64,000 nt of DNA from Macrostomum lignano (lineage: Eukaryota). A program made the position numbers and the translations under genes. Positions 1 to 50,761 of this stretch are shown here, piece after piece. The stretch spans positions 186,001 through 250,000 of the forward strand of contig NIVC01001362.1 in assembly GCA_002269645.1 (NCBI GenBank), written 5' to 3'. Position 1 is the stretch's first letter. Each line of letters opens with the position of its first letter. Below the pieces are notes generated by a model. It was not told the origin of the DNA. It saw only the letters and a program-made list of their open reading frames with translations, and made no database searches.

Positions 1-447
1 CCAATATCCTACAGTGGGAGCTCAGCTGCCATCCAATATCCTACAGTGTGAGCTCAGTTGCCATCCAATATCCTACAGTGGGAGCTCAGCTGCCATCCAA
101 TATCCTACAGTGGGAGCTCAGCTGCCATCCAATAACCTACAGTGGGAGCTCAGCTGCCATCCAATAACCTACAGTGGGAGCTCAGCTGCCATCCAATATC
201 CTACAGTGGGAGCTCAGCTGCCATCCAATATCCTACAGTGGGAGCTCAGCTGCCATCCAATATCCTACAGTGGGAGCTCAGCTGCCATCCAATATCCTAC
301 AGTGGGAGCTCAGCTGCCATCCAATATCCTACAGTGGGAGCTCAGCTGCCATCCAATATCCTACAGTGGGAGCTCAGCTGCCATCCAATATCCTACAGTG
401 GGAGCTCAGCTGCCATCCAATAACCTACAGTGAGAGCTCAGCTGCCC
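1..447. repeat. 32-bp tandem minisatellite (CCAATATCCTACAGTGGGAGCTCAGCTGCCAT)n in an ERGIC1 intron; continues beyond the window start
   Basis: About 14 near-identical units visible directly; explains the repetitive ORFs 14..433, 142..423 and 174..506. Confidence 0.97.
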
Positions 448-489
448 TCACAGAGGTACCTAAAGTCACCCCGGAGCATTCAGCCTCAC

Positions 490-3400
490 CCTGTACACAG
501 ACGTGAACTGATACGGAAACAGCCTGAAGGATGGTGCGTCAAATATCGAGGGCACAATTTTGAGAAAATAATCGTGCGAAATGCCTTCAGGCTTATCCGT
601 CACGGACCGATTATCAAGCGGCGTGAACGAAGAAACCTCTTTGAAAGCGTGACGCAGCTGACTGTTAGCCGTACTACCGAAGGACAGAGTGTGAATCACG
701 TGATCCAGACTGGGCACAGAAGCGGCTAAATCTTCGCTACTACTACTACTACTATCCTCGTCCGGAACAGTAGTAATATGAAAATTTCCAGAGATTTTGG
801 CAACGCGAAATGAACTGCGCAATAGGCAGCCAACGCCGCTGGGCAACTTCTCTTTGATGTTGCTCAGCTGAAAACCCACATCTTGCCGGCCGAGATCGTC
901 TTGAATAACCAATGCCAAACGATTGCAAGGTATGTGCAGCACCGATATGTTGATGTACACGGGAATAAATTCGTACGATTTTACTGGATCATCGATGTAG
1001 ACTTCACTTTTGCTGCAAACAAAGATAATATTTTTTTTAACAATTTCCATTGAAATGAAAGTGTCAATAATTACAGACTTACATCTCAGTATCCAAATAG
1101 GAGCTAAACTCTGACAACAGCAGGTAAAGACAAAATGTAATAGTTGCTATGGATATTATAGCACCAGTTCGAGTTGGTTGAGTCAGATCTTTAGGTATTT
1201 TCCGATAGATGTCGAACCTACAAAATTAAATAGTAGTGACATAGTGTAAATCATTAAGTTAGTTGATTTTTTTTAAAACTGGTGTTCCACCATCATTACA
1301 GTTACGGTTACAGTAAATTACGGGAGCAGCACTTTTCCAGCCATATTTTCATTATGGATTACTGCTACGGCAATTTTTAGCTTATGGCTATGGTTAGGAA
1401 TTACACCAAATTTTCAGGCTTTGCCATATTGGTTATCCAATATTGTTGTCATTGAGTATAAAATTAAAAATTAGAATTAAATATTTAGGCTTGATAAGAC
1501 AGTCATAGTTACTCCTGCCATTTACCCAAAACTGCGTTAATTTTGCTTTAGGGTTTCTTTCACAGGTAAGTCATTTCACAGCGTGGCGCAGGTTGTGTAG
1601 GCGTCTGGCGTACTTAAGCCATGCGCTGCAATAGGGTGCTGCAGGTCCGCATGTGCAGACAATAGAGGGAATTAGCAAGTCTTGGCATAGAATGGCAGTA
1701 GGAAGGTTGCAACCCTATGCTGACATGTCCCTTCTCCCCAAGCAATTTAAACTAGAGTCAGTGCATGTTTGCCTCACACTACTCTTAGTAATTAAGGCCA
1801 CAAGTCAGCCTTGCTCATAGCCACAAAGGATCCCCTACTGAGAAATCCTCCAGATTGAGCCCAGAGTTCCCAATCATGCCCCAAGCAGAGTCCCTATACT
1901 TGGCTGCATGTGTTTCCCCTGCTAGTCTAAATTCCCTAGTAACCAATCCAGGCGGGGCTCTAGCCTCAAGAGGTCTAGTAGTAAGATCTAGGTGCACCAG
2001 GTCACATAAAGTGATGGCAGCCACTCAGTGATGCTATGACCGAGTGACCAACTATTGCACCTTGTCTACAGGTGGGCTCCATGTGGGTCCTTGGCCTTCT
2101 GGTCTCAAAAGCGCTACCAAAGCTATCAATCATGTGGGGAGAACAGTCTGGTGCTAGAGGTCTGTCAGGTCATTGCCCAGTCATAGGCAGCCTATAGTCA
2201 TTGCCCCCTCTGGTCATGCGTTTGTCTCCCAGCAGAGTGGACAGGCAACAAGGGCAGTTATATCACTTAGTTTAATTAATATTAAAATAAAGTGTTTAAA
2301 AAATTAAAATAAAAAACTTAGGCTAAAATATTGATGCTAGAAGAATAAATAGATAGGCCACTTAGAAAATTTGTCTACAAGCTACTTTTAGTGTAGTAGT
2401 AAGCTAAATAGAAGCCTTTTAATGTATCTTAAAACCAGGGCTTATTTATGGCTCTTACATTCCCTAGCTTAAACCTATTCCAACAACACCATTCCACACA
2501 ACCTCTGCTTTTTTTTTAATATACATTTTAAATGTATTTTAAATTTTAAATTTATTTTAAAATTATAAAAATTAAAATTTATTTTAATAAATAAATTATA
2601 AATTAATAAATTATTAAATAAATAAATTTAATAAATTAATAAATTATTTTAATTTAAATAACAAATTTAAAAGTAGTCGTTGTTATAAAAATTCTAAACA
2701 AAATTGACTAGAGACTTAAATATCTTATTTTATATTATATTTGAAATATCTTATATCAAAAGCTAAGCAGAGTGGCAAGTAGAAATTAGATAGGATTGAT
2801 ATCATTAGGCAAGATTAAGGTTGGAAATAAAAAAAATCAAATTTGGAATCAGGATTAGGATTTAAGAATTGGGATCAATTCTTTCAATGTATTATAGTTT
2901 GTTGGTTTAAATAAAGTTGAACAAAGTTAAACAATGTTAAGATCAAAAGGTGAAACATTATAAAATAGCTTTAATATTTTGTAACTAGTTAAAAACAATA
3001 TAATAAATATTATTTAAATTAAAATATATTTAAATAATTATTAATGCTACAAAGCTTTAATTAAAAGACCTACTTTCAAATCATATTTTTAGGGTCTAGA
3101 TCCCAGTTTAATAAGAGTCTATTTTTCTTTAGAATCCTAAGACTTCAAGATTAGGATTGAGAATTGAGGATCCCATTTGACCAAACTTGCTTTATTGGCT
3201 AGGCAAGTTTAAAATGTATCTAATTCTAAATAGCTAAAAACTTAAATTCAAGACAAATGGGGGCTTACTAAAGATTAGGCCTATAATTAGATATAATTAA
3301 AAATTGAACAAATTTGCATTGTTTTTATTTGTTTAACAATAATAAATTAGCTTTGTTGCCTCTAAGTAGGAAAAAATTAAAAAATGCTAAATTGTATATT

Positions 3401-5837
3401 GACTTGCTTTGATTACAATTAGGGCCTATTAGGCTTTTCATAGTAAGATTTTCATACTGTTTATTTTGCTTTCAGAATTGGTTCCAGAACTATGTTCTAG
3501 TTCTGGAATTTGGAGCAATAAATTTTATTGATCCATTGTCATATTTATATTTTAATAGTAAAAAATGACATATTTGGAATTGTCAATTTTTTTATTATTA
3601 GCATATAACTAGCAATCTAGTGCAGCTCCCCTTTGGGGCACCCAATAAGCAAGGAGCAAAAATAGTTCATGGAAAACAATTAAAAAAGCACTTTTTCTTA
3701 AATACTGATTCCTTCTTCACTTTCATACATGCGCAACCCCCCTGATTTACACTGGCCATGCGACTTACTTTTTGACCAAAAATGTGACTTACCTGTAAAA
3801 GAAACCCTAACGCAATTTTGGGTAAACGGCAGGAGTAACTATGACTGTCTTATAAGGTATAAATGCCTCGTCATCTAATTAGTACTATGTCTGTATTCTT
3901 CAGGCTGGGAATTTTTGCGACTTACCCCTGGTCCACCACAATTTACGGTGGCCAGATCGGCCAGGTCGGCCAGCAGTTGCGCATGTATGTTCACTTTTAA
4001 AAAGGCACCTTATTCATGTGGAATTGTCATGGACAATGATATTTGCTATAAATCTTTTACTAAGAAACCATTTTTAGTTGGATGGATTATTTTATTTTTT
4101 GTCATGTCCAAGAAAAAACAAAATCAAGGAAAGAAAAAATCAAATTGTAAAGACTGGCAAACATAAAATGGGTTTGAAGCTTTTTATTTTCCTATTGATT
4201 CTAGTTTTGGAATCAGAATTATTCTAGTTCTAGAATGAATCTTTGTGAAAAGCCTATAAAAGAAGAAAAATAATTACAAGCATTGATTAGGCCTATATAT
4301 ATAAGGGGAAATCCAAAAATTGGGGGCAAGTTTTATGAAAATTCGTTTTTTGGCAATTTGAAAGCAATAAAGCTATAAAATAAATTTATTCAAGTTTTTA
4401 AAAGGTAAAAAAGTCTATTAAAGCACAAATTATTTTTGTATAGCATTATTTTTAATAAAATGATTTGTTAAAACGGTAAGTTTAATTACAACCTAAAATG
4501 AGTCTAATGAAAATGATAGAAAAGCTATAATAATGTATTTTATTAACTTTAACTATCTTATAATGTTACACTCTATAATTCTACAACATATTTAACATTA
4601 TTTTCAAGGGTTTATTTGTTTATCACTTTTGTTACTCTTGACAACGTGTATTTTGTAGAGTTCATTTGCAATAAATTGTATTCAACGTAAGTTTATTATT
4701 TAAACATACAAATTCCTATAAGGATCAGAAAATTTGCATTTTACTCAGCTTCTACTAAAGCGATTTGGAAAATTCTTTTTTTCCTGCATACACGCCGCGA
4801 TGATACATGTTTTTGTGTAATTTCATTGTTCTTCGTTGCTTAATAAGCATATAGTAAGCATCTGATTTGGAAGCCGGGTAACACATTGGAATTCCCATAA
4901 GGATTTGAAAATTGCATTTTACTCAGCTTCTACTAAAGCGATTTGGAAAATTCTTTTTTTCTTGCATACACGCCGCGATGATACATGTTTTAGTGTAATT
5001 TCATTGTTCTTTGTCGCTTAATGAGCATACAGTAAGCATCTGATTTGGATGCCGGGTTCACATTTTGTGGTACCATTTTTTACCCAAAATTTTTAAGTCT
5101 AAATATAGGCATATTACAAATACTAATACTATGCAAGTTGATATTTAAATGAAAGAAAACAACTTAAAGATTATTTTGCAACAATGAATTAGCGATATAT
5201 TTACTTTTAGAGAAAGATGTTTGCTGGCAAACTTTGCACTTTATATTAGTATGGATTTTTGCGAGTTTATATGGTTTTAGAAAAACTTTGAAATCCTTAG
5301 AAATACTTCATCTTTTTGAATTGAATAAAAAGTAAAACACAGATTACTTTCTGTTTTGTAAGTAGTAAAAAAATTAGCCTTCTCTAAGGCCTACAAGTCT
5401 TAAAATTAATTGTTTAATAATGAAAAAAGTGAAACAAAAAATTGCAAATCGGTCAACTCAGACTTTCAAAATGCTTTTTTGTGGTTTTTTCTTATTTATT
5501 CAACAATATAAAGCATGGAAACAATAGTTTTTATCCAGAACTATTTTTTAAAGACCTATCAATCTTTCAAAAACCTTTTTTAGATACATTACTTTCCATC
5601 AAATGTCCGCAGATTTGTTTTACTGTTTTATCCCACGTTTTTGGATTTCACCATAACAATAATAGCAATAAAATTGTAACATATCTATCTAGGCCTAGGG
5701 CCTATTCAAAGACATAGGGCCTAATAATATTAATAATTATGTATTGAGGCCTAGCCTATACTGAGGCCCTAGTCATTTATTCACTATTTAAAATTAATAT
5801 AATCAACTTACCTTCGAATATCAAATTGAAAAACCAT
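490..5837 (-). CDS. ERGIC1: ER-Golgi intermediate compartment protein 1 (ERGIC-32), 3'-partial; exons complement(5812..5837, 1083..1217, 490..1012)
   Basis: Spliced translation MVFQFDIRRFDIYRKIPKDLTQPTRTGAIISI...TEIKSEVYIDDP...GCLLRSSFRVAKISGNFHIT...HVIHTLSFG...SHDYFLKIVPS...YQFTSVYR matches ERGIC1 motifs as I recall them (RRFDIYRKVPKDLTQPT, GNFHV, HVIHKLSFG, SHDYILKIVP). All junctions are GT-AG with consistent phases (2,2,0); 684 nt in frame. The last exon(s) lie outside the window. Confidence 0.93.
1491..3883. mobile_element. Putative non-autonomous TIR element or inverted duplication whose termini contain 28S rRNA-like sequence
   Basis: 1491..1573 is the reverse complement of about 3785..3856 apart from an 11-bp indel and a few substitutions. 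The interior is degenerate, with no intact ORF. Confidence 0.5.
3820..3883 (+). pseudogene. 64-bp 28S (LSU) rRNA-derived fragment spanning the R2/Pokey/I-PpoI target site; a shorter inverted copy lies at 1491..1527
   Basis: GGGTAAACGGCAGGAGTAACTATGACTGTCTTATAAGGTATAAATGCCTCGTCATCTAATTAGT versus the conserved eukaryotic 28S GGGTAAACGGCGGGAGTAACTATGACTCTCTTAAGGTAGCCAAATGCCTCGTCATCTAATTAGT. Confidence 0.85.
4711..5064. repeat. About 179-bp tandem duplication (2 copies) in ERGIC1 intron 1
   Basis: AATTCC(T/C)ATAAGGAT at 4711 and 4890; the copies align throughout with a few substitutions. Confidence 0.9.
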
Positions 5838-6659
5838 AATAGAGCTCCCTGACTTCAGTGATGTTTATTGGTATTTACTATTACTATTACAAATTTAATG
5901 AAAGAGCTATGAGTTTAGGACACAATAGCAATAACAATTTTGAATGTTGTCTTGTCTATTAAGATTTAGGCTTTAGCTAGCTAGGCCTATATATAATTTT
6001 AATACTCTTAGGGGGGCCTAATGTAGTATATGATTAGTAAGCCTTATACTATTTAGGAAACGTAGAATTGTACTAATTTGAGTAGGGTACGCTAGTACAA
6101 ATAATTAAATATCAATAGCTAAATGCTCTTAAATAAATGCAAGCGCAGGCCAAGATGACAAGTAGAGTAGTAGAGTAGTAGACCTAGGGCTATAATGCAA
6201 TCGTAAAACACTTTAGTGAGTTGAATTGTTGGAATAAAATCTGATTAAATCGATCAGACCTAGTTGTTACCAATTATGCTTATCTACAACGACCATTCAA
6301 AACGCCAACTGACAAGGTAAATGTTAGTTAGGCCTATGAAAACTTGTATATTGTTGTACAGTGCGCTTTTACAAATTGCACTTGCCATATTTTAACTAAT
6401 TTATAAGCTACCATATAAGAATGATGAATTTATAAACGAAATAACTAAACATAATAAAATTTCAAACACAAAAAGGGTATAAGATTTATTATTTTGTTTT
6501 GATCGGAAGAACTTCTTATAATTTTTCTTAGAATACCTGTAGTATACAGTTTGCTCTTCGCAGTCAAGTGGAAATTCAACAAAGCCGCAGTTATTTTATG
6601 GTCTTTATGATTGCAATTTCAAGGGTTTTCAATGGATTAATTTTTTAAGGTGAAACATA
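5838..6659. promoter_or_regulatory. Shared bidirectional promoter region of ERGIC1 and CRTC
   Basis: Divergent ATGs at 5837 (minus) and 6660 (plus), 822 bp apart. TSS positions cannot be determined from sequence. Confidence 0.6.
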
Positions 6660-9600
6660 ATGCAGTCTTCTAAGTCAAACCACGGTTCACTGAATCCTCG
6701 AAAGTTCGACGAAAAAATTGCATTGCTTCAAGCAGGTGAAGATGAATCCAATGAAAAATTTAATCGTTTGCTAAACGAATTAAGCGTTTTAAAAAACAGA
6801 GTAAGTGTTTTTAACATAAATTTCATGTTAAATATAAGCTTTTTGTCTGTTCTATTTGTAGGCCTAGTTGAAGTGTATATTGTATCCTATTCTAATATTT
6901 ATAGCTATGCCTATGCCTATGGGTAATTTAGACTAGGCCTAAGGGCCTATCCATTCTTTGACTAAATTGTGGCTTTTGGTCTCTAGTCTAGTTTTTTAAT
7001 TTAATATTCAAAAAAATCTTCTAACACTAAACACATATATAACTTGGTTATTTATATATAGGGCCTAATATCTTAAAGTGCAATGTTTGGCAAAGTTCCC
7101 ACTTTTAGTACTGGAAGTTACTTTTTTACCTGTATAACTTTCACCAACACATTTTCAAACACAGTCTGATCATTTCAAATATTGCAAAAAGTGTCAGAAA
7201 AAGTGTTGTGATACCAATGGTTAACTTTTGCTATTCACATTTTAGATGCATCTTATAGTCCATAGTCTGGATCATGTTAAGTGGGGTGCATGCAGTATGC
7301 CCAAACAAAAATTGAATAATTACAAAAAATGCATACCAAAAAAATTAAGTGCACACCCATTCTCAAAACTATGCCAGTATTATGATAATAGGATACATGT
7401 GCAACTTTGGAATTACCTTGCTGTTTCTATTGGCAATGCACATATATAAGTTGCTTTTGGCTGAGAACAGTCATATGACTACTTTTCCATTTAATAGTGA
7501 CTTACATATGTGTGTTTCTAAAAGAAATGGCCAAGTGAAACAAAAGTTGCACCCAAACATGGACAATAAATGACATTTTTTGAATTGCATAATAAACATT
7601 TTTTGGCTAATAATTTGGTTCATTTCTCTACTTTTTTGATAATACTATTTACAATAGAAAATTAATGTATTCAGATTTGTTTGAATGCTTTATTATGAGC
7701 TTAAAAACTCAAAAGGCTTAAAATTTATTGTTTAAATAAACCTATTTTTAATTTTTTTATTTCATATTAATTCTTCCGCATGATTCTATGAAGTGCATGC
7801 TAGGCCAGGATGGAATTCTTGCACAAAAGTTGTTACGCATTTGTGCGCAATTGTTAAATTTGTGTCCACTGAAAAGGAGCCTACTTGCACGCTCTTAAAG
7901 AAGGTGCGTGCACGCTCCATTGTATGCGCTTGTGAAAAAGCTGTTTGCCATAGAATCATAGACAGGATTTGACTTTTACATGCATTCAACATGGCTATGT
8001 GCCATGTAGTGTATGCAGGCTTAAGTTCTCCTACTTTTCATAGTCTGGAAGGTTGTTTTTACTCTGGAAAATTTTGAACAAAAACAAAGAATAATAGGTT
8101 TTAGCAAAAACAGTTACTATTAAAGTTAAGTTAAGAATATTTTCTCTAAAAATTATAGTGTTCAAGCTACTTTACACTTAAAGTACAACTTTCTAATTTA
8201 CATCGGCATAAGAATTGAACAACTAAAAATTTCATAAAAGGCCATGATCTGAATGATGACTTTTTTACAGCTGGTATGCGTAGTTGCGCGCTGCTCCAAA
8301 AATCTGCGCGCACATTTTCCTACCCCCAAGCAAGTATTCCATCCTGGATGCTAGGTATATATGCACACTTTTCTTAAGAGTGATATACAATGCATGCCAA
8401 ATTCGCATGCCTACTTTTGGCATGCAAGGCCAATGGACACCCAAATTTTTAGGCATTTACTATATAATCTGGAGTGTGGCTTATATTTTGGAAGGCAATA
8501 TGGGAAAGGAAATCCTGGCATATAGTAAAAAGTCTAACAATTTTTCAGCATACATCAGAGTATATGACCTTAGGATACTCAGGATCATCTGAGTATCCTG
8601 AGGTCACCTGTACCAGAATGAATCCTATCAAAAATGCATGCTTATGCTATGCCAAAACTATTTTTATCAAAAAAAAATTGCTGACTTTGTGTACCATAGC
8701 TTTTTTAAAAATGCAGAAATCAAAAATTTTCCTTTTGAAAAATACTAGTAGAACTTGTTTTTTAATCTGTTTCATAGAAAATGCAATGTTAACGTAAATT
8801 AATTAAAAAGCTGTCAATATACCAGCAAAAAGAAGTGCTAATAAAAAGAAATTACATGCTAATTTTCTGTCAGAGAAAATATTGTCTTCTTAGAAGTTTT
8901 TGTCTTGCACCAAATTGTGTTTTTTTTCTATCTTGTGCTGTACTGTGCCATATTTTTCTCCCTTGCCTATAGTTGCACTGGAATGCACCAGTGTGGCACA
9001 TGTCCAACCCTCTTTTGCACCAGAATTTTCCATGAAAAAGGCCATCTTCCTAACTATGGCATTTGACTAGTATATATAGCATAGCAAATGCACATGCACA
9101 ACCTTGGGAATCACTTAGCTGTTTCTATTGATAACATACACATGTAAGTCGCTATTGGCTAAGAGCAATCATGTGACTACTATTCCGTCTAATAGTGATT
9201 TACATGTGCGTGTTGCCAATAGAAATAGCCAGGTGAATCCTTAGGTTATGCCCAAGCATGAAAGTATAGCTGCTATAAAACTATAGCACAATACTAGTAG
9301 GATGACAAGAATGACCCAGATAACTAAAAGTTGTCTAAAATATCCTACTCATTGTGACACACCTATTGGATAAAAATTATTTCTGTGAATTGCAAGTATA
9401 GTGTCATGATACATCAGATACTACTAATCCTTGTTTTGTAAAGGTTTTGTTTATTTAGTGAGATTTTGGATGCAATAATAATAAATATTATGTAGCATCT
9501 TTATTTGAGAAATAACTGAATGTTTAACTCTAGACCAACACATGTTTTTTGTTTTTTTACAGACATGCTTGAGCACTTTTTAATTAGTGGTTCTTTAAAA

Positions 9601-12600
9601 TTAGAAAGGACCAGTAACCAAAGTGCCTGAAGTTACTCTCCTTGGAACTGGAAGTTACTTAACCTCCAACATTGTTAAAATGTAATTGGACCATCTTGCA
9701 GCCAATAGCCATTATCATGGTCTGGTGCATATTGGCTCCTAGCAATGTGGGCATGGTCTAGTATGCTAGAATGGTCTGGCCTAGGAAAGGAGGGCATCTG
9801 GCACAATTTAAACCTTATTGGCTGCAATCTATATTATAGAAAGTATAGGATATACCAGAAATGCTTTAGCTAGTGTATCTAGTATATAAATGCTTTGGTA
9901 TTGGCTGGTATACATCTGGCATACAGGAAAAAATACAATTTAATTTCTGGCACAATTATTGGCTTACAGTTCTTAACTATATTTATTCAAGCTTGCAACA
10001 CAGTATATTAGGCCTAACCATTGTCAGAAAGGGGTCCAATGTATGCTAGAGTTTTTTTTGGGCAAAACTTTACATTTATACGAAGTATGCCAAAAATTGT
10101 AAATGTGACTGTCATGTCACATCATATGCTTTACTAGATAGCTGAATACTTTCTGGCATATATATATATCACAATCTGCAATATGGGCTTCAATAGGGTA
10201 ACCAAATTTGGTCATTGAAAAAACTACAATCAATACTCATAGAAGATAGCAAATTTATAATACAAAAGATTGCAGCAATTTTATTCTAGTAAATAAAAAA
10301 ATGAAACCTAAACATTTTAGAAAACCCCTAATTAAAATAGCTGCCATCAGAGGGCCTTGTTTTGTCACCAAAACATCTTGCTACCAAAACAATTATAGCT
10401 AATTCTTTAAAACAGAATTTAAAACATGCTATATAAACTTATTTAAACAAAAAAATTTTTTACTGCTCTAGATCACATGCAATCCTTGATTTTGTGTTGC
10501 CAAAAAAATTATAGAAAATTGCTCTTAAAAAATCATATAATCTTTGAGTTTGTCAATTTTATTTCAATGATCCTTATAATAGAAGTGTTTAGCAGTTTTT
10601 TGTTTATTTTCTAAATGCTTTTACCTTTTCTAAAGTAGGTGTCTCAACTTAATTTTTTACTGAATAAAATTGCAATTTCTGCTACACTTCTATATAATAT
10701 ACATTTTTATTGTCAAAATTTCATAATGATTTATAGAACTTGACCGATTTCAAGCTTGTGAAGATTTGAACTTGACGAATTTCAAGCTTGTGAAGATTGT
10801 CATGATCCTATGACGAATAATTCTGATCACTCCCTACCCCCCCCACTGCTCCACAATGTTGCTCAGTTGTCCACCGGAGACCCGGCCAGACGCACCGTAT
10901 CCACGCCAAATGTTTCCGGTGGCGCCAGGTCTGGCGGCGCCAGTCCCGCGCCAAGCGGTGTCTACCCAGCGGCAGCGGCGCCAGACTCCGCGGCAGCTCC
11001 ATCAACCCCAATCGGTCAATGCGGTTTGAGCGACTCTTCATCCAGCCTAGCCGTGGGATTGCAACAGCAGCCCAACCCCCTGACCCTGTCTCCTCAGCAC
11101 CAGCCCAACTACAGCAACTCTCCCGTGAGCTCTCCGACACACGCTGCCAGCGCCTATGCAGCCTCCCCAACTGGCTATGCTCTGAGCCCAGCCTCCGCCC
11201 TTCATCAGCAACAGCACAGCAGCAGTGCTAAGCATCGAGTTCGCGAATACATCATCTCTAAAAGCCGCGATCATCGACCGCATCCTTATTCGCCAACCCA
11301 TCGGTCCAGAGACGAGTACGATGAACAGCACTTTGGCGGAGCGGGGGTCGGTGGCGGCGGCCTGGGCCCCCCGCTGGGCCCTCGCCGGGCTTCATCAGAC
11401 ACAAATATTGCTGAGAAGCTGCAGCAGCCCGGCTTTGCAGATTTCTATTACGGAGCAGTTGGCAGCGATGGCCAGCAGTTCCAGGTTCAACAGCAGATGC
11501 CACCGCAGCCCATAGCCGTGTCAATGACTTCTCCGTTGCTGCAGCAGCAGCTTCTTCTTTTGCAACAACAACAGCAGCAGCAGCAGCAGCAGCAACCAGT
11601 GATGCTTCAGAGTGACATGACCAAACTAAGCTTGGCTAATCAGCCTGTGCAATCTGTCAATCAGCAGCCATCTCTGGTAGCCGCACTGTTAACTGCTCCT
11701 GGAAGCAGCAACTGTCACAGCAACAGCAATAATTCCGGCCAAAATTATCGATCCAGCTGGCATCACTATCAGATGACTCAATCGGATGAAGATCTATCCG
11801 GCTTAGCTGCTTCATCTCCGTCGGCCCAGCCTCCTCAACAGGTGGCGCCAGGCCAGCTAGTGCTGCCGCAATCGCCCACTGGCCCAATACCGGATATCCG
11901 GGTCACTCCCATCAGCCAGGCCGCCGACATGCCGCCTCCGCCGCCCCCGATGCAGCAGCCGCCGCCTCTGACCACCGTCTCGATGACCGCCTATGCAAAT
12001 TCTGACTTGACTCAACAGCACCTGGATAATAGCTGCGGTGGTGAGTGATGCTGCTGGCGGAATCTTGATCTTCATCTTCATCCAATAGATCAGGCCTGAA
12101 GCCAATCAATCAGCTCTGAAGCCAATCAATCAGACCCTGAACCCAATCAATCAGACCCTGAAGCCAATCAATCAGACCCTAAAGCCAATAACCAGACCCT
12201 GAACCCAATCAATCAGACCCTGAACCCAATCAATCAGACCCTGAACCCAATCAATCAGACCCTGAAGCCAATCAATCAGACCCTGAACCCAATCAATCAG
12301 ACCCTGAAGCCAATCAATCAAACTCTGAAGCCAATCAATCAGACCCTGAAGCCAATCAATCAAACTCTGAAGCCAATCAATCAGACCCTGAAGCCAATCA
12401 ATCAAACTCTGAAGCCAATCAATCAGACCCTGAAGCCAATCAATCAAACTCTGAAGCCAATCAATCAGACCCTGAAGCCAATCAATCAAACTCTGAAGCC
12501 AATCAATCAGACCCTGAAGCCAATCAATCAGACCCTGAAGCCAATCAATCAGACCCTGAAGCCAATCAATCAGACCCTGTAGCCAATTAATCAGACCCTG

Positions 12601-13330
12601 AAGCCAATCAATCAGACCCTGAAACCAATCAATCAGACCCTGAAGCCAATCAATCAGACCCTGAAGCCAATCAATCAGACCCTGAAGCCAATCAATCAGA
12701 CCCTGAAGCCAATCAATCAGACCCTGAAACCAATCAATCAGACCCTGAAGCCAATCAATCAGACCCTGAAGCCAATCAATCAGACCCTGAAGCCAATCAA
12801 TCAGACCCTGAAGCCAATCAATCAGACCCTGAAACCAATCAATCAGACCCTGAAGCCAATCAATCAGACCCTGAAGCCAATCAATCAGACCCTGAAGCCA
12901 ATCAATCAGACCCTGAAGCCAATCAATCAGACCCTGAACCCAATCAATCAGACCCTGAAGCCAATCAATCAGACCCTGAACGCAATCAATCAGACCCTGA
13001 AGCCAATCAATCAGACCCTGAAGCCAATCAATCAGACCCTGAACCCAATCAATCAGACCCTGAAGCCAATCAATCAGACCTTGAACCCAATCAATCAGAC
13101 CCTGAAGCCAATCAATCAGACCCTGAAGCCAATCAATCTGACCCTGAACCCAATCAATCAGACCCTGAAGCCAATCTAACTGACTTTTTAAGTGCACTTA
13201 AACACTCGCAGTCCGTCGAGACTCGTACACCATGGCAACTGAGGTGCTGGCCAGCTTAGCGACTGCGGCGCCCCCAGCTGGTTTGGATTCCAAAATGAAC
13301 GGCGATCAAGGTGGCGGATTCACTTTCTAA
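6660..13330 (+). CDS. CRTC: CREB-regulated transcription coactivator (CRTC/TORC)-like, about 477 aa; exons join(6660..6800, 10867..12040, 13212..13330)
   Basis: Exon 1 has the TORC_N motif NPRKFDEKIALL followed by a GTAAGT donor. Exon 2 has RTVSTPNV, the SIK/AMPK-type site RRASSDTNI, the PxIxIT-like PDIRVT and Q/P-rich tracts, ending at a GTGAGT donor. Exon 3 is the only open frame compatible with phase 1 and is followed by AATAAA at 13405. The exon 2 acceptor and exon 3 are less certain than exon 1. Confidence 0.82.
7399..7552. mobile_element. Palindromic MITE-like element, copy 1
   Basis: Ends GTGCAACTTT...AAAGTTGCAC; internally homologous to 9100..9247. Confidence 0.6.
9100..9247. mobile_element. 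Palindromic MITE-like element, copy 2 (57-bp arms, 34-bp spacer)
   Basis: 9100..9156 matches the reverse complement of 9191..9247 at 45 of 57 positions without gaps. Confidence 0.65.
12082..13176. repeat. 21-bp minisatellite (GCCAATCAATCAGACCCTGAA)n, about 50 copies, in CRTC intron 2
   Basis: Direct inspection; produces the heptad ORF 12172..13197. Confidence 0.97.
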
Positions 13331-13654
13331 GTCTGCGTGCTGAATATCGAGATGAAGAACAGGTATTGAAACATTGTATTTTAAGGCAACAACAAGATTT
13401 TGTAAATAAATTCGAAATTTTGAGCATTCTCTGGAGTGTTTTTTCATGGTTTTAAAACTATATGCTGGAATTCTGTTTGAACTGTTTGAATCTGTTTGCT
13501 GTTCCAAGGTTTTTGTCTGTTAATTAATAATCATATAAAGGATTGTTTTAACTGTGCATAAGTAGCAAATATAAGTGGCTATTTTCATCTCACTGCTGCC
13601 ATGTTTCTGTGCTTTATTTAAACTGTTTATTTGCCGGTATATGTCTGGGTGCCT

Positions 13655-13925
13655 GCGTACGGTATTGACGCGCCTGTATGTGCGACTGAAAGGTCGGGGG
13701 TTCGATTCTTGACCTACTCAGAACAATTTGTGTCCTTGAGCAAGAGACACTTAACTCTGCATTACTTCAGTTCACCCAGCTGTAAAATAGGTGCCAGCAT
13801 TAGCTGGGGTAATTGAGGATGTGTGTGGCGACCCCCCAGTCCTTGGACTGAACAGCCGTACGCAGCCTTCAGATGCGCCGCGCAATAGCTGCGGCTGAGC
13901 TGTCGGTTGCACATCTGCTCATTAG
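13655..13925 (+). mobile_element. tRNA-derived SINE, copy 1
   Basis: B-box GGTTCGATTC followed by the central domain GTCCTTGAGCAAGAGACACTTAAC...CCCAGCTGTAAAATAGGT, typical of metazoan conserved-domain SINEs; two more copies in the window. Confidence 0.8.
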
Positions 13926-14721
13926 GGTAGGTGTAATCAATTACTCTATTATTATGTGCTCAGGAGCCAGTGGAATGGGCCGAATTGCCAAGAGTTGCCA
14001 TCAACAATCGTGTTCTTTAAAACTCAAATTTGCAAGCCAAGCCCCGTCTGTCTAACTTGCAGCTGCAGTTGTACTTTTAACAAAGCGCAGAAGTAAGCAT
14101 AATTGCTTTACTGTGCATACACAATAATATGTTATCATAATTTCTTGCTGTCAGTTTTTTTTCGTTTGGTACGCTTACTCTGGGTTATAATTATAGTTGT
14201 GAAATTGACTCAATGCATGCTTTGGTTGTGGTTAAAGTCGTTTATAATCTTTCTTTGCCAACCACCCTATGATCAAAATATTTACTGGTTTAATCTGTAC
14301 TTTTGTCGTGCTTTTTTTCTTTGGTTCCTTTATATGCGATCAAAACAACATTAGTTCTTTATCAACTATTTAGTATTATGCTTTATACTGCATATTAACC
14401 TATTATAAGTTAGTTATGGTTAAACTGCTCAATGAAAGTTATCTGGGTTTTCATTGTGACAATGGTTATTGGTCAGCGTGAAATTCTTAGTAGAAGTCTT
14501 CTCTTCTCTCGCGGTAAATATTATCTTAACTAGCTCATTTTTTTACTTAAGCATATTCTTAGATGAAAAAGGTGAACCTCCTGTCCTATAATCGTGATTT
14601 GGCCAAAGCTTGTAATTTTTTTAATAGTAATTTTTTATGTGCGTTTAAATAGTATTTTTGCATATTGCGATACTGTACATATTTTAAGCTGCATCGTAAA
14701 TAATGATTGTGAGGTTGTGTT

Positions 14722-15293
14722 GAGTCAGGTGTCAGATTGATGAGCTGCTGACTCAGTCAGGTGTGAGATTGATGAGCTGCTCAGGTGTGAGATTGATGAG
14801 CTGCTGACTCAGTCAGGTGTGAGATTGATGAGCTGCTGACTCAGTCAGGTGTGAGATTGATGAGCTGCTGACTCAGTCAGGTGTGAGATTGATGAGCTGC
14901 TGACTCAGTCAGGTGTGAGATTGATGAGCTGCTGACTCAGTCAGGTGTGAGATTGATGAGCTGCTCAGGTGTGAGATTGATGAGCTGCTCAGGTGTGAGA
15001 TTGATGAGCTGCTGGCTCAGTCAGGTGTGAGATTGATGAGCTGCTGACTCAGTCAGGTGTGAGATTGATGAGCTGCTGACTCAGTCAGGTGTGAGATTGA
15101 TGAGCTGCTGACTCAGTCAGGTGTGAGATTGATGAGCTGCTGACTCAGTCAGGTGTGAGATTGATGAGCTGCTCAGGTGTGAGATTGATGAGCTGCTCAG
15201 GTGTGAGATTGATGAGCTGCTGGCTCAGTCAGGTGTGAGATTGATGAGCTGCTCAGGTGTGAGATTGATGAGCTGCTGACTCAGGTGTGAGAT
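14722..15293. repeat. Minisatellite of mixed 32-bp and 24-bp units (TCAGGTGTGAGATTGATGAGCTGC[TGACTCAG])n
   Basis: Direct inspection. Confidence 0.95.
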
Positions 15294-16048
15294 GAACGAT
15301 ATAGTGTCTCAGTCTCAAGTTTACAGGCGCACTCGACCTGATAAATAAAGTTTTGTGTTTATCTCAAGTGTACAATAACATGATTGTCAAATAAAATACA
15401 TGTCGAACTACAGTATCAATTCATCATTATTTATCTAGCCTTGTTCAGTGTCAAGTTTCTCTTTTTGTTTACTTTTTGTCTCTTTGCCTCTTCCTCGTTT
15501 TAAAAACACAAGACCGCCAGTACTGTTATAATTACCATTTAATGCTTACTTAATTATTTGTATTCTTTTTCTACCTGTACTATGGTTCACTCTCAGTTGC
15601 CAATGTAATCATTTGCTAATCCTACATTAATTTATACAGTATCAGCTCTGTTTGTCAGTTTGTCATCTCTGTCTGAGGCTTCTGTTTTACATCTGCTGCA
15701 TAAGTACTACTAATATACTGTACAAGTATTACTCCTATATTTACAAAGTAGAGATCGCCTATTCATTATGTTTGCTATTGAGAAAACAACAATATAGAGA
15801 TGAGATATTGCTTTTGGTGTGCTTCAACTTTTACCTTTTAATAAAATGCCCGCTTGCTTGGTACGCAAATTTTATTATTATTATTAAATATTTACTAAAC
15901 GAAAAGCAATTCAACTTACTCTTTGTTTTAAAAAATTGGCCTTCTGCGATTGGTTGCTTTGAGTGTAGGAGCTCGTAGTGCTCATTCTGTGGATATAAGA
16001 AATTCAGAACTAAGCTCAGTCGCTTGATGTATCTAGAATATAAATTTT

Positions 16049-18841: not shown

Positions 18842-19853
18842 GAGTGTTTAGAATCTAAACTGAACTCAAAACTAAACTCTAGCATCGAGTGTTTAGAATC
18901 TAAAACAAACTCTAAACTAAACTCTAGCATCGAGTGTTTAGAATCTAAAACAAACTCTAAACTAAACTCTAGCATCGAGTGTTTAGAATCTAAAACAAAC
19001 TCTAAACTAAACTCTAGCATCGAGTGTTTAGAATCTAAAACAAACTCTAAACTAAACTCTAGCATCGAGTGTTTAGAATCTAAAACAAACTCTAAACTAA
19101 ACTCTAGCATCGAGTGTTTAGAATCTAAAACAAACTCTAAACTAAACTCTAGCATCGAGTGTTTAGAATCTAAAATAAACTCTAAACTAAACTCTAGCAT
19201 CGAGTGTTTAGAATCTAAAATAAACTCGACACTAAACTGTGGCATCGAGTGTTTAGAATCTAAAATCAACTCGACACTAAACTGTGGCATCGAGTGTTTA
19301 GAATCTAAAACAAACTCTAAACTAAACTCTAGCATCGAGTGTTTAGAATCTAAAACAAACTCTAAACTAAACTCTAGCATCGAGTTTTAGAATCTAAAAC
19401 AAACTCTAAACTAAACTCTAGCATCGAGTTTTAGAATCTAAAACAAACTCTAAACTAAACTCTAGCATCGAGTGTTTAGAATCTAAAACAAACTCTAAAC
19501 TAAACTCTAGCATCGAGTGTTTAGAATCTAAAACAAACTCTAAACTAAACTCTAGCATCGAGTGTTTAGAATCTAAAACAAACTCTAAACTAAACTCTAG
19601 CATCGAGTGTTTAGAATCTAAAACAAACTCTAAACTAAACTCTAGCATCGAGTGTTTAGAATCTAAAACAAACTCTAAACTAAACTCTAGCATCGAGTGT
19701 TTAGAATCTAAAATAAACTCTAAACTAAACTCTAGCATCGAGTGTTTAGAATCTAAAATCAACTCAACACTAAACTCTAGCATCGAGTGTTTAGAATCTA
19801 AAATAAACTCGACACTAAACTGTGGCATCGAGTGTTTAGAATCTAAAACAAAC
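18842..19853. repeat. 45-bp satellite, array 2
   Basis: Same unit as array 1, more homogeneous. Confidence 0.95.
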
Positions 19854-22528: not shown

Positions 22529-34267
<11,739 letters not shown>

Positions 34268-41341: not shown

Positions 41342-41358
41342 GTACTTGCTTCGGCAGT

Positions 41359-41398
<40 letters not shown>

Positions 41399-41448
41399 GG
41401 CCCCTGCGCAAGGATGACACGCAAATTCGTGAAGCGTTCCATATTTTT
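41342..41448 (+). ncRNA. U6: U6 spliceosomal snRNA, copy A
   Basis: Full length, with the ACAGAGA box, AGC triad, ISL GGCCCCTGCGCAAGGATGAC and oligo-T terminator. The 5' stem GTACTTGC-TTCG-GCAGTAC keeps its pairing. Confidence 0.98.
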
Positions 41449-41794: not shown

Positions 41795-42520
41795 GCCCCC
41801 TTCCAGAATCCGCCCCCTTCCAGAATCCGCCCCCTTCCAGAATCCGCCCCCTTCCAGAATCCGCCCCCTGCCCCTTCCAGAATCCGCCCCTTCCAGAATC
41901 CGCCCCCTTCCAGAATCCGCCCCCTTCAAGAATCCGCCCCCTTCCAGAATCCGCCCGCTTTGGTATTTACCCTCCAGAATCCGCCCCCTTTGGGTCTTTA
42001 CCCCCCAGAATCCGCCCCCTTTGGTCTTTACCCTCCAGAATCCGCCCCCTTTGGGTCTTTACCCTCCAGAATCCGCCCCCTTTGGGTCTTTACCCCCCAA
42101 AATCCGCCCCCCTTGGGTCTTTACCTCCCAGAATCCGCCCCCTTTGGATCTTTACCCTCCAGAATCCGCCCCCTTTGGGTCTTTACCCCCCAGAATCCGC
42201 CCCCTCGAGTCTTTACCTCCCAGAATCCGCCCCCCCTTGGGTCTTTACTTTACCCTCCAGAATCCGCCCCTTGAGTCTCTACCCTCAAGAATCTGCCCCC
42301 ACCTTGGGTCTTAATTACCGTCCAGAATCTGCCCCTTGAGTCTTTACCCTCCAGATTCCGCCCCTTGAGTCTCTACCCTCTAGCTAGAATCTGCCCCCCT
42401 TGGGTCTTTACCCTCCAGAATCCGCTCCCTTGGGTCTTTACCCTACAGAATCCGCTCCCTTGGGTCTTTACCCTCCAGAATCCGCTTCCTTGGGTCTTTA
42501 CCCTCCACAATCCGCCCCAC
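41795..42520. repeat. GC-box-rich minisatellite (CCAGAATCCGCCCC core), array A
   Basis: Direct inspection. Confidence 0.93.
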
Positions 42521-42789
42521 CTCAACAAATTTCTGGTTGCGCTAACTGTCTATGACTCTTTCTATAGTGACTAGAATAAAGGTCTCTTTTCGACTTAAGG
42601 GAAGTAAATTAGGCTCATTGACACTCCCGCCATCCTTGCCATCAAATAATGATGTATTTGTACAAAGGAATGAAAGTTGATGTACAAGTCTCGAGATTAG
42701 CTATACGAAATCTGGTCAGATTTGATAGAGGTGTGAGTTGTGAACGAACCTTCAGTCTTTAACAACAACAAAATACGCATCAAGCGTCA

Positions 42790-43660
42790 AGCCTGCGGCG
42801 CTCAAACGAGTGCCTGCGGCGCTAAAATGGTGCGTGCGGTGCTCAAATAACTGCCTGGGGCGCTAAAATAAGTGCCTGCGGCGCTCAATGAGTGCCTGCA
42901 GCGCTAAAATGAGTGCTTGCGGCGCTAAAATGAGTGCCTGCTGCGCTAAAATGAGTGCCTGCTGCGCTAAAATGAGTGCCTGCGGCGCCAAAATGAGTGC
43001 CTGCGGCGCCAAAATGAGTGCCTGCGGCTGCGGCGCTAAAATGAGTGCCTGTGGCGCTAAAATGAGTGCCTGCGGCGCTCAAATGAGTGCCTGCGGCGCC
43101 AAAATGAGTGCCTGCAGCGCTAAAATGAGTGCCTGCAGCGCTAAAATGAGTGCCTGAGGCGCTATAAGGAGTGCCTGCAGCGCCAAAATGAGTGCCTGCA
43201 GCGCTAAAATGAGTGCCTGCAGCGCTAAAATGAGTGCCTGCAGCGCTAAAATGAGTGCCTGAGGCGCTATAAGGAGTGCCTGCAGCGCCAAAATGAGTGC
43301 CTGCAGCGCTAAAATGAGTGCCTGTGGCGCTAAAATGAGTGCCTGCGGCGCTCAAACGAGTGCCTGCGGCGCCAAAATGAGTGCCTGCAGCGCTAAAATG
43401 AGTGCCTGCAGCGCTAAAATGAGTGCCTGAGGCGCTATAAGGAGTGCCTGCAGCGCCAAAATGAGTGCCTGCAGCGCTAAAATGAGTGCCTGCAGCGCTA
43501 AAATGAGTGCCTGAGGCGCTATAAGGAGTGCCTGCAGCGCCAAAATGAGTGCCTGCAGCGCTAAAATGAGTGCCTGCAGCGCTAAAATGAGTGCCTGCAG
43601 CGCTAAAATGAGTGCCTGAGGCGCTATAAGGAGTGCCTGCAGCGCCAAAATGAGTGCCAA
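42790..43660. repeat. 21-bp minisatellite (GGCGCTAAAATGAGTGCCTGC)n, array A
   Basis: Direct inspection. Confidence 0.95.
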
Positions 43661-44714: not shown

Positions 44715-47700
44715 TGTAGCATGCGCAGGCAGGCAGTTCGGGTACCTAGTTTGCACTCCGTGACCCCCACCCAGCCTATCCACTTCCCTCTGCTCGAGCA
44801 CATCCCAACGCGCACTCAATGAACCGGAAATATGTGTTCTACCAGACAATAAATATACAGGCACAGCCACATTCTATTTCTTCACCTTTTGAGTGGCTAA
44901 CGAACACTCGCAACAACCAGCTAGTGTTGCTCGCTACATTGGCGTCACAAGCCAGAACCTAATGGCGCTACTACAGCTACAGCCGCCATCCGCATTCAGC
45001 ATTAGCGCGGACCCCCACACCGTCAGCAAGCGCTGGACAGAGTGGGCCACCACACTAAAGCGATTCTTGGCAGCATCAGGAATCTCGGACGACGCCCAGA
45101 AGCAGGAAATCCTCCTGTATACCGCGGGAAAAGAGGTTGCAGACATCTTTAAAGAGATCTCACAAACGCGTCCCGCCACTGACCAGCCGGAGCAGCAAAC
45201 GCTTGACTCACTCATAGCGGCGCTAACTCAGCACTTTCAAAAACGCGACAATGTGGTGTTCACCCGGTACCAATTCCGCCAGTGCACGCAGCTAGACGGC
45301 GAAGGCATCGACAGCTGGCACAACCGACTGTGCAACGCGGCTGAGGCCTGCCAGTTCGGAGAGCTGCGCCAGTCCCTCATCCGCGACCAGATCGTCGCCT
45401 GCTGCCGCAGTGAATCCCTCCGAAAGCGGCTGCTCAACGTGCCCAACATCAGCCTCCCCGATGCCCTCCAGCTGGCGAGAACAAACGAAGCAGCCAGCCA
45501 GCAAGCGGCAATCATGGAGCGCTCGGCAGCCGGACCAGCTGAAGAAGTGCATGCGGCAAGCGACAAGCGCCCCACCAGGCGCCCGCCAGCTAGCCCGGCC
45601 GACAAATGCCTGCGGTGCGGAGAGCCCGGCCACCGCACTTGCAACCGGGCCCAAGGCAAGCGCTGCAGCAACTGCGGCAAGCTGCACCACCTGGCGAAGG
45701 CCTGCCTAAGCGGCCGCGCACGCATCAACATGGCAGAGCCCGAGCCAGAGGAACCAGCAGTGGCGCACCTGGCGGAGGCGGTATTCTCCAGCCTCGACCC
45801 CAGCCGCACAAGCACCACCTTCAAAGCGGTCATCAACGGCGCGAACGTACCCGTCCTGATCGACAGCGGTGCGAGCTGCAACGTGCTCAGCCAGCGGACC
45901 CTTCGTCTAACGGGAGCACCCGAGCGGGCGCTTCAGCCCACGCACACGAGGGTCTATCCTCTCGGAGCAGCGAGGCCCCTGACACCCGCTGGCCAGATCA
46001 CTCTGCACACGAAGATCAACGGCAACTCGGAGAGAGTGCGCGTCATCGTCATCAGAGAAGACTGCATCACCATCCTAGGCCGCGAGACAAGCACGCAGAT
46101 GGGGATGCTGAGGGTCGGACCGCAGGCCGAGACAGCTCTCACCGCCGGACTGACACCAACGGTTAACGACCTGCACCTTCCGCAAGACTTGCGACTGTCA
46201 TCGATCAGGAAGGAGTTCAGCGACAGGTTTCAAGGAATCGGCTGCATCAAGGGCGTCTCAGTCAGCATCCAGCTGAAAGAAGAAGCGGTGCCAGTCTGCC
46301 ACCCTCCGTCTCGAGTTCCAGTGCATCTTCGAACCACCGTGGAAAAGGAGCTGAAGGGCCAGCTAGCAGCCGGCATCCTGGAGCGAGTGACGGGGCCCAG
46401 CGCTTGGAGTTCACGCATGGTGGTCGTTCCAAAGGCCTCGCCAGGCGAAATCCGCATCACGCAGGACCTGAGGGACGTCAATAAGTACGTCATTCCAGAA
46501 AAGCAGCCAATACCGACATTCGAAGAAGTCACCGACGAGATGGCCGGCTCCACCTATTTCTCCGAACTAGACGTTGCCAAGGCCTTCCACCAGATCGAGG
46601 TCAGCGAGGAGTCCCGGCAGCTGCTCACTTTCTCAACGCCTCTGGGCCTGCTCCGCCTCAAGCGCCTTTGCATGGGATTTACCTCAGCATCTGAAATCCT
46701 ACAGCGCGTCATGACATCTATCCTGAGCGGTTTGAGAGGCGTGCGGTGGGTCCATGACGATATCATTATCTTCGCCAGCACCATAAAGGAGCACAACGAG
46801 AGGCTGCGCAACTGCCTTGTCAGGCTGCGTCAACACAACGTGACTCTGAACCCCCGCAAATGCCGCATTGCAACCCAGCAGGCCGACTTCCTGGCCATGC
46901 GCCTCTCGGCGGCCGGAATCCAACCGACCGAGGAAAAGCTGGAAGCTGTGGCCAACTTCAAGCGACCAGAAAATGCAACGGAGGTGCGGTCCTTTCTCGG
47001 ACTCGTCACATTCGTAGCCCGCTTCATCCCAAACCTCGCCGACAAAGCGAGGCCACTTCGAGAGCTGACCAAGAAGAACGTGAAATGGTCGTGGGGTCCA
47101 CAGCAAGCCTCAGCCTTTCAGACAATCAAGCAGTCGATCGCTCACAGCACCACGCTTGCCTTCTTCAACAAGAACTGCGAGACCAGGCTGATCGTCGACG
47201 CCAGCCCGACCGGCCTCGGGGCGATCCTCGCCCAGGTGCAACCTGGCGGCCTCACCAGGCCAATCGCCTACGCCAGCCGCAGCCTCAGTGACACCGAGCA
47301 GCGCTACTCGCAAACAGAGAGGGAGGCGCTGGCCGTCAAATTCGGGTGCCTCAAGTTCCACCACTACCTTAGCGGCTGCCCAAAGTTCAAGGTCATCACC
47401 GACCACAAGCCGCTGGTCAGCCTGCTCAGCCCCGGCTCGCGGCCCCCGCCACGGATCGAGCGCATGGCACTTCGGCTGCAGGATCTCCACTTCGAAGTCA
47501 CCTACCAGCCGGGCGCAGACAACCCGGCAGATGTCCTGAGCCGTCAGCCACGTCCAACACCGCCGAACAACCAGGGTGAGGATCTCGACACGGCTTACAT
47601 CGCAATGACAGCACAGGCAGCAGCACCGAACAGCATCAGCCTCGAAACGATCAAGGTTGCCGCCGCAGGCGACAAGGCGATCCAAGCCGCCGTATCCGGG

Positions 47701-50704: not shown

Positions 50705-50721
50705 GTACTTGCTTCGGCAGT

Positions 50722-50761
<40 letters not shown>

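Follow-up and report, generated by a model that had tools for sequence, protein, structure and literature searches.

The 64-kb stretch of Macrostomum lignano DNA that we analyzed (hereafter the window) carries an ERGIC-like gene on its minus strand. Exon 1 of this gene occupies 5837-5812 (ATG...CGAAG) and is followed by the donor GTAAGT, intron 1 extends over 1218..5811, and exon 2 starts from 1217. Intron 1 hosts two pieces of 28S-like sequence, and the intronic location given in the preliminary description of this DNA is correct. The M. lignano assembly includes three homeologous subgenomes (PMC10733133). We compared the window with two homeologous loci, L001 and L002, so that the comparison covers three homeologous loci in all.

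The 28S likeness of both pieces was evaluated with BLAST against true 28S, rebuilt from the metagenome contig L005. The right piece, 3820-3883, has 89.4% identity over 66 columns (E 6e-12), and 1495-1527 in the left piece has 93.9% identity. The Rfam model LSU_rRNA_eukarya (model positions 2206-2310) matched 3790-3885 with 34.1 bits and E 3.4e-7 when 111 nt were searched, the alignment being confident only from 3820 onward. The fragment appeared only in this 111-nt search and went unreported when Rfam was run on the whole window and on 1000-4600. An antisense match to snR63, also from Rfam, was rejected as a mere reflection of rRNA complementarity. These comparisons confirm that 28S-like sequence at 3820..3883 is accompanied by an inverted copy of its 5′ half.

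The two pieces lie in inverted arms, 1483-1549 and 3798-3864, of 67 nt and 85% complementarity. A second pair of arms, 1543-1573 and 3785-3815 (31 nt, 94% complementary), is offset from the first by an 8-bp indel and, as had been claimed, takes the inverted match inward into non-rRNA sequence. Two 26-mers, GGCAGGAGTAACTATGACTGTCTTAT and TGACTTACCTGTRAAAGAAACCCTAA, each have one occurrence on either strand of the 64 kb and no others, while the shuffle control for such repeats gave 0 of 100 shuffles with any match. Both 28S-like copies also have the two substitutions reported for them, GGCAGGAG and GACTGTCT, as well as extra bases within TTAA, which reads TTATAA at 3849-3854 in the right copy and TTATCAA in the left. 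The first of these substitutions, GGCAGGAG, is also found in a genuine 28S gene (contigs L004 and L005), and it therefore need not be a mutation that followed capture.

Insertions of one MITE family at homeologous sites

The right 28S-like piece is internal to a complete MITE of 266 bp, copy A, which lies at 3724..3989 on the plus strand, matches the nhmmer family profile over the full model length (E 3e-82) and is missing from L001 and L002. Copy A is flanked by a perfect 8-bp TSD, TTCACTTT, read directly at 3716..3723 and 3990..3997. The same 8-bp target occurs once at each of the empty homeologous sites, near 19202-19209 in L001 and near 16119-16126 in L002. The TIRs of copy A on the plus strand, CATACATGCGCAAC at 3724..3737 and GTTGCGCATGTATG at 3976..3989, are complementary at 14 of 14 positions and coincide with the insertion boundaries set by the empty sites; the 5′ terminus recurs on a further copy, copy C, in L001 and L002. 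The insertion of copy A postdates the divergence of the window locus from its homeologs.

Within copy A, the 28S rRNA-derived module occupies 66 bp (3820..3885, plus strand; about 2236-2310 of the Rfam LSU model) and has the TTAAGG/TAGC hotspot inside it. Subterminal repeat motifs were detected on the plus strand by direct reading and motif scan: GCGACTTAC at 3760..3768, GTGACTTAC at 3784..3792 and, in the 3′ arm, a second GCGACTTAC at 3917..3925 in the same orientation as that of the 5′ arm. The motif GCGACTTAC recurs in all family copies and may be bound by transposase. Read as its reverse complement, GTGACTTAC falls within CAGGTAAGT, which matches the 5′ splice-site consensus perfectly and runs in the sense direction of the host gene.

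At 7330..7337 the window has an empty target site, TGCATACC (GGTATGCA on the minus strand), which is occupied in both homeologs by copy C, 299 bp long with the TSD GGTATGCA (L001 8206-8504, L002 8259-8544). Copy A is present only in the window locus and copy C only in L001 and L002, and from this reciprocal presence and absence it follows that members of the family moved when the M. lignano subgenomes had already diverged. The family is a usable marker for the history of these subgenomes.

The left 28S-like piece belongs to copy B (1483..1573, minus strand), a truncated MITE which matches only model positions 62-152 (nhmmer E 1e-27) and has neither TIR in the window. Its 28S-derived part, 1490..1527 on the minus strand by direct reading and BLAST against 28S, is the 5′ half of the module only. 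Orthologues of copy B lie at 23223-23452 in L001, with the 3′ TIR kept, and at 19649-19798 in L002. Copy B is an older insertion, common to the homeologs and opposite in orientation to copy A, and later deletions in the window removed both of its ends. Copies A and B belong to one MITE family, were inserted independently and face each other by chance, in agreement with the earlier view that both derive from a common intermediate and not independently from rDNA.

We sampled the family in about 177 kb, comprising the window and L001-L003. The nhmmer profile found there exactly six copies, counting homeologs, from three independent insertion events, and no further or older ones; TIR and motif scans of the same sequences added just weak TIR-like strings near 7392. 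The family elements are about 266-300 bp long and non-coding, with 14-bp TIRs (CATACATGCGCAAC), 8-bp TSDs and 3-4 subterminal GCRACTTAC repeats per element. TIRs at the exact boundaries, 8-bp TSDs (TTCACTTT for copy A, GGTATGCA for copy C) that are each single at the empty site, and a non-coding length of 266-299 bp identify them as MITEs. The longest ORF has 49 aa, and a protein search with it returned no relatives. This anatomy implies that the elements would be mobilized in trans by cut-and-paste, probably by a DDE-type transposase, which would bind both the ends and the subterminal repeats and cut with a stagger of 8 bp. No autonomous partner with the same termini was found in the window or L001-L003.

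Origin and conservation of the 28S module

The module is present in all six copies, and in all three independent insertions it is internal. Since every family copy seen has it, the module was most likely acquired once, by the family founder. By the most likely route, an rDNA unit would have been the template for filler DNA during double-strand-break or gap repair, and the module gained in this way would since have been a passive passenger with no role in the ends or target of the element. Very probably, then, this is a MITE family with one founding capture of a 28S module, carried passively ever since, the module defining neither ends nor target. The preliminary description had offered two alternatives. 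Its undescribed non-autonomous DNA element with ends mimicking rDNA is right in that a non-autonomous DNA transposon is involved, but the ends are not 28S. The second alternative, a captured and repaired cleavage site, is the better of the two as regards the capture of a 28S site.

The similarity to 28S is confined to the core of the element, since comparison of the arms with the 28S flanks gave p > 0.1. For the same reason we rejected an origin of the entire MITE by decay of an rDNA fragment, and the upstream extension of 28S likeness seen in lenient alignments is unsupported. In the sampled DNA, 28S-like sequence occurs exclusively inside copies of the MITE family. For annotation this is a caution: short dispersed "rDNA fragments" in M. 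lignano can be MITE cargo and not rDNA relics.

How much has the module changed relative to the rest of the element? Its only ancestral indels are a gain of 3 bp at TTA/A and a loss of 2-3 bp at GG/TAGCC, both within 12 of the 66 bp of the module, a stretch in which the two known cleavage positions also lie. Their placement at TTAA and AAGG/TAGC, seen in three insertions, could be more than chance. When copy C was compared with copies A and B, the module was more conserved than the arms (88% vs 68%, p = 0.002, and 80% vs 65%, p = 0.03), whereas copy A against copy B gave 86% vs 82% (p = 0.55). Conservation of the module above the arms is not the obvious behavior of a purely passive passenger.

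These observations bear on a reading in which the MITE family is the same but the module is non-neutral. The module may have been retained for a benefit, such as nucleolar or rDNA tethering, pairing with 28S at the RNA level, or a landing pad outside rDNA for site-specific endonucleases; or it may preserve the trace of an rDNA unit damaged by cleavage and faulty repair at the TTAA/R2 hotspot. Two of the three comparisons, with the module conserved above the arms, agree with this, as do the ancestral indels in the 12-bp stretch with both cleavage positions. However, there are only three insertions, one of the comparisons (A against B) gives no difference, and the arms contain more CpG and low-complexity runs and give poor alignments. 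Ascertainment is also biased, the module being the most recognizable stretch of 28S, and no insertion within any module was seen. We regard this reading as improbable. Its fuller form, in which the MITE dispersed the copy of an rDNA unit with a cut and a faulty repair at the TTAA/R2 hotspot, and this copy was kept under some constraint as an endonuclease decoy or landing pad, or as an rRNA-pairing or nucleolus tether, appears quite improbable, but if true it would explain both why the module is the best-conserved internal part and why its indels lie solely at the two cleavage positions.

Less probable readings and the nearest known elements

The preliminary description had proposed a non-autonomous DNA transposon of 2.4 kb (1483-3864) that ends in the 28S fragments, so that its TIRs either are the 28S target or resemble it. 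This is suggested by an inverted similarity of about 90 bp in which the 28S part lies on the outside, but the right arm belongs to copy A, a 266-bp insertion that has TIRs and a TSD of its own. Both L001 and L002 hold the supposed interior, 1636-3723, together with the empty site of copy A, so the interior did not arrive with the right arm. The left fragment is not a terminus either, being truncated in the window, while its fuller orthologue in L001 continues outward beyond the 28S part to its own outer TIR. Positions 1483 and 3864 are not flanked by a TSD or any direct repeat, and paired inverted 28S termini with TSDs occurred nowhere in the sampled sequence, an outcome that the preliminary description had itself named as contrary to its proposal. 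The comparison with the empty sites refutes the 2.4-kb element, which is thereby extremely unlikely. A composite "macrotransposon" of copies A and B was rejected as well, because copy B has neither TIR and the interior is older than copy A. The attractive idea of transposon ends that mimic the rDNA hotspot is removed; the element is of an ordinary kind with one odd passenger, the 28S piece, and its value is modest.

That a one-off rDNA fragment underwent local inverted duplication would fit the occurrence of just two copies in the 64-kb window, but it is refuted, and hardly credible, given that copy C is a third insertion, at an unrelated homeolog site with its own TSD, and that copy A was inserted precisely, with a TSD, and did not arise by duplication.

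Retroposition, either of a 28S-derived SINE (SINE28-like) or as a by-product of R2-type retrotransposition, was considered because the 28S sequence in the element spans the R2 site. Environmental 28S genes do hold a genuine, degenerate RT-bearing insertion exactly at AAGG/TAGC. Two metagenome contigs, L004 and L005, were retrieved with the variant sequence of the module as query and proved to be unrelated to the MITE: both hold true 28S genes into whose R2 site a degenerate element with an RVT_1 remnant, about 3.2 kb long, has inserted. The M. lignano element resembles R2 in that its module includes the target AAGG/TAGC, with a small deletion there. It differs in having perfect TIRs, a fixed 8-bp TSD, no RT and no poly(A) or A-rich 3′ tail, and in lying in an AT-rich intron outside rDNA, while the genuine occupant of the site is the L004/L005-type insertion. 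We give retroposition almost no likelihood.

The 8-bp TSD is compatible with hAT, P, Merlin and other superfamilies. Elements of the hAT superfamily have TIRs starting YARNG and prefer the target nTnnnnAn. The TIR of the M. lignano family starts CATAC, and its two targets depart from that preference, T at position 2 being found only in TTCACTTT and A at position 7 in neither. MITEs and internal-deletion derivatives of cut-and-paste transposons with 8-bp TSDs, of hAT type (Ds1-like) and P type, resemble the M. lignano element in small size, lack of coding capacity, short TIRs, subterminal repeats, 8-bp TSD, foreign filler in the middle of the element and insertion polymorphism between homeologs; apart from TIR start and targets, the M. 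lignano element differs in having a recognizable 28S coding fragment as filler.

The preliminary description had also looked toward piggyBac/Pokey, Dada and R2, and a link to none of them was found. Dada elements are DNA transposons tied to multicopy RNA genes (U6, U1, tRNA, 5S), inside which they insert with 6-7-bp TSDs. The association of a DNA transposon with multicopy RNA-gene sequence is common to both, but the M. lignano family has 8-bp TSDs and AT-rich intronic targets, and the three U6 genes of the window are all intact and uninterrupted.

Pokey and mPok of Daphnia (piggyBac) likewise combine a DNA transposon and a MITE family with internal rDNA-derived sequence (PMC10946416 Table 2; PMC3849761), and the same 28S neighborhood is involved (TTAA in CTCTTAAGG). 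However, Pokey inserts into the 28S TTAA with a TTAA TSD and its rDNA part comes from the IGS, whereas the M. lignano MITE has 8-bp non-TTAA TSDs and intronic insertions, and the 28S site is inside it and not flanking. SINE28, a mammalian 28S-derived SINE, is also a mobile element with a 28S rDNA fragment (PMC10946416), but it is a retroposon, while TIRs and a fixed 8-bp TSD make the M. lignano element class II cut-and-paste.

Modules derived from rDNA are a known phenomenon in transposable elements, ascribed to modular reshuffling (PMC10946416). In a table of that 2024 review, the only entries derived from 45S rDNA (IGS or 28S) are the Pokey IGS repeats and the retroposon SINE28, the others being 5S promoter modules in SINEs and LTR/TRIM elements (PMC10946416). 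The M. lignano family adds to this short list a DNA transposon/MITE with a 28S coding fragment.

Nearby, no transposase was found apart from a mariner transposase in L001, of the type that makes a TA TSD, a mismatch to the 8-bp TSDs. A protein search with it retrieved only foreign short contigs at identities up to 66% and no new M. lignano loci. The window also contains a Ty3/gypsy ORF.

Host intron and inverted pair

A Macrostomum lignano ERGIC-like protein is matched at 100% identity by the exon at 487-1011 (minus strand). Positions 1-15837 of the window are identical to contig NIVC01001362.1 (L003) of assembly GCA_002269645.1. The first exon of the ERGIC-like gene occupies 5837-5812 and the second begins at 1217, both on the minus strand, so the inverted pair of 28S-like pieces falls within intron 1 (1218-5811, minus). 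The M. lignano assembly comprises three homeologous subgenomes, S, L1, and L2 (PMC10733133), and two additional loci of the gene were found in GCA_002269645.1, here called L001 and L002; comparing the window with them settles what the 28S-like pieces belong to. Intron 1 is 4.6 kb long in the window versus roughly 11-15 kb in these homeologs. The intron and its surroundings (2001-10000) are markedly AT-rich, with 28-34% GC versus 40-60% in most of the window. Tandem arrays of 32-bp and 21-bp period, at 1-450 and 12082-13176 and at the equivalent places in L001 and L002, vary in copy number among the three loci and produce long spurious ORFs. A later intron of the gene holds a mariner-type transposase ORF (HTH_48, HTH_32, Transposase_1; L001 29581-30612 and L002 25677-26540, both minus strand), intact in L001, whose best relatives in databases reach only 66% identity.

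The inverted repeat claimed in the preliminary description was confirmed between 1483-1573 and 3785-3864. An 8-bp indel divides it into arm pairs of 67 nt and 31 nt, which are 85% and 94% complementary, respectively. Across the 64 kb, two distinct 26-mers taken from the repeat have exactly two occurrences apiece, one on each strand; 100 shuffles gave 0 matches. That the right arm is 28S-derived in its outer part is also borne out by Rfam and BLAST. Positions 2206-2310 of the Rfam eukaryotic LSU model correspond to 3790-3885 (34.1 bits; E 3.4e-7 with 111 nt searched), the confident portion beginning only at 3820. With a true 28S reconstructed from an environmental contig as the reference, BLAST gave 89.4% for 3820-3883 (E 6e-12) and 93.9% for the left copy, 1495-1527. 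The shared substitutions and the extra bases within TTAA are as had been described.

A MITE family with a 28S module

The 28S fragments had been taken for the termini of a 2.4-kb element, its ends possibly mimicking the rDNA target. This is refuted, as the right arm lies midway along a 266-bp element with its own terminal inverted repeats (TIRs) and target-site duplication (TSD). The window alignment to both homeologs breaks exactly at 3723 and restarts exactly at 3990. Where L001 and L002 have a single TTCACTTT, the window has TTCACTTT, 266 bp, and TTCACTTT again, that is, an 8-bp TSD at a site that is empty in the relatives. The inserted sequence (copy A, 3724-3989) begins with CATACATGCGCAAC and ends with its perfect reverse complement, forming 14-bp TIRs; with the TSD and the homeologous empty site, this is a textbook insertion. 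Its 28S piece (3820-3885) is central, with 96 bp of the element on one side of it and 104 bp on the other. The supposed interior of the larger element (1636-2523 and 2648-3723) aligns to both homeologs at 90-92% (with L002, the second block aligns from 2843 on); since they have it without copy A, it did not come with the right arm. No direct repeat flanking 1483/3864 was found in the window.

Copy C (L001 8206-8504, 299 bp; L002 8259-8544, 286 bp) has the termini, subterminal motifs, and 28S module of copy A. It is bordered on both sides by GGTATGCA, and the window has a single GGTATGCA at 7330-7337 and no element. Being reciprocal to copy A, present in L001 and L002 and absent from the window, copy C indicates that these elements form a family.

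Nor is the left 28S fragment (in copy B, 1483-1573) an element terminus. By profile search it covers only family positions 62-152, in reverse orientation, while the fuller L001 counterpart (23223-23452) extends outward across what remains of the 28S module and across the 3′ arm, as far as a TIR of its own. The 28S part is thus internal here too, and it seems terminal in the window because of a deletion: about 1.5-1.7 kb found in L001 and L002, including the 3′ third of copy B, is missing. The L002 counterpart (19649-19798) has a different truncation. Since both counterparts are present, the insertion took place before the three loci diverged, and each locus has afterwards undergone different deletions or insertions. 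The 150 bp at 1486-1635 correspond to 3.1-3.8 kb in the homeologs (L001 24961-21189, L002 21233-18132), where the extra DNA forms two blocks of repeat sequence, partly GC-rich, one on each side of copy B.

The family therefore inserted both before and after homeolog divergence, and the intron contains two facing copies of one MITE with a captured 28S fragment. We hold the identification as a MITE to be very probable. The family alignment reads TIR, 5′ arm, 28S module, 3′ arm, and other TIR. In the 5′ arm, (A/T)TGCRACTTAC occurs two or three times; the 3′ arm has it once more, likewise oriented, along with GGCCAG/GGCCGA repeats. On its minus strand, copy A carries a perfect 5′ splice-site consensus, CAGGTAAGT (3788-3796), in sense orientation relative to the ERGIC-like gene within intron 1. 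Its GCRACTTAC subterminal motifs (also 3760-3768 and 3917-3925) each read GTAAGT on the host-gene strand, and such sites could act as candidate cryptic donors for the transcript.

Mobilisation and known systems

The element works like an ordinary MITE. It contains no meaningful ORF and would be mobilised in trans by a DDE transposase recognising the TIRs and subterminal repeats and cutting with an 8-bp stagger. A TSD of 8 bp is compatible with hAT, P, and a few others; the usual hAT terminus is YARNG, unlike the CATAC found here. No partner element occurs in the ~177 kb of sampled DNA, and the sole nearby transposase is mariner.

Unlike Pokey/piggyBac, the element lacks a TTAA TSD and lies outside rDNA; unlike Dada, it has another TSD length and sits in no RNA gene. 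In contrast to an R2 product or a 28S-derived SINE, it has TIRs and a fixed TSD, with no tail and no reverse transcriptase. A real R2-site occupant was seen in two metagenome contigs and bears no resemblance to the MITE. There (L004, OMLO01003472.1, 1483-4911; L005, Ga0126337_10003471, about 6350-9668) true eukaryotic 28S genes are split exactly at AAGG/TAGC by about 3.2 kb with a degenerate reverse-transcriptase ORF (RVT_1). The 5′ junction has an 11-bp duplication, TGACTCTCTTA, and an inverted 28S segment (model 1489-1888) adjoins the insert upstream. A recent review tabulates the rDNA-derived modules of TEs, and no DNA transposon carrying a 28S coding fragment is among its entries (PMC10946416), so the MITE family is probably undescribed and its cargo probably unusual.

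Origin of the 28S module

How did the module enter the family? It is carried by all three independent insertions, so the founder already had it, which confirms the common intermediate proposed earlier for the two pieces. Only about 66 bp resemble 28S: when the arms were compared with what borders this region in real 28S, no significant similarity emerged (p > 0.1), and BLAST found no 28S-like sequence outside the MITE copies in the sampled DNA. Most simply, rDNA would have been captured once, as filler in the repair of a break or gap, at the time the miniature element formed. Such an origin agrees with the attribution of rDNA modules in TEs to modular reshuffling (PMC10946416), and we regard neutral filler as a reasonably likely reading.

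Copy comparison suggests an ancestral CTTATTAAGG in place of 28S CTTAAGG and a 2-3-bp loss within GGTAGCCAAA, so the only ancestral indels of the module are at the TTAA and AAGG/TAGC positions. Comparison of copy C with copies A or B also shows stronger conservation in the module than in the arms (88% vs 68%, p = 0.002; 80% vs 65%, p = 0.03), but A and B show no such difference (86% vs 82%). Filler capture leaves the indel positions and this conservation unexplained; both are leads only, because there are three insertions, the arms align poorly, and taking the most recognisable 28S stretch is itself a bias. The GGCAGGAG substitution occurs natively in the genuine 28S genes of L004 and L005 too, and may be no more than the source's own native sequence.

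Elsewhere in the window, Frizzled-family receptor exons (7TM region, Fz cysteine-rich domain) lie at 22529-24377 and 28530-29372, both on the minus strand. U6 snRNA is encoded by three identical full-length genes (each scoring 118 bits; 41342-41448 and 50705-50811, plus; 54561-54667, minus), whose upstream sequences are nearly identical over about 110 bp and include a TATA-like box. Between two of these genes lies an uninterrupted 1362-aa ORF (44893-48981, plus), a Ty3/gypsy-type retrotransposon pol that has protease, RT, RNase H, and integrase domains. Tandem repeats of ~21 bp adjoin the U6 genes (long array 52268-54338, also 41910-43658), and the blocks at 41.9-43.7 kb and 51.4-53.1 kb are duplicates, about 89% identical.
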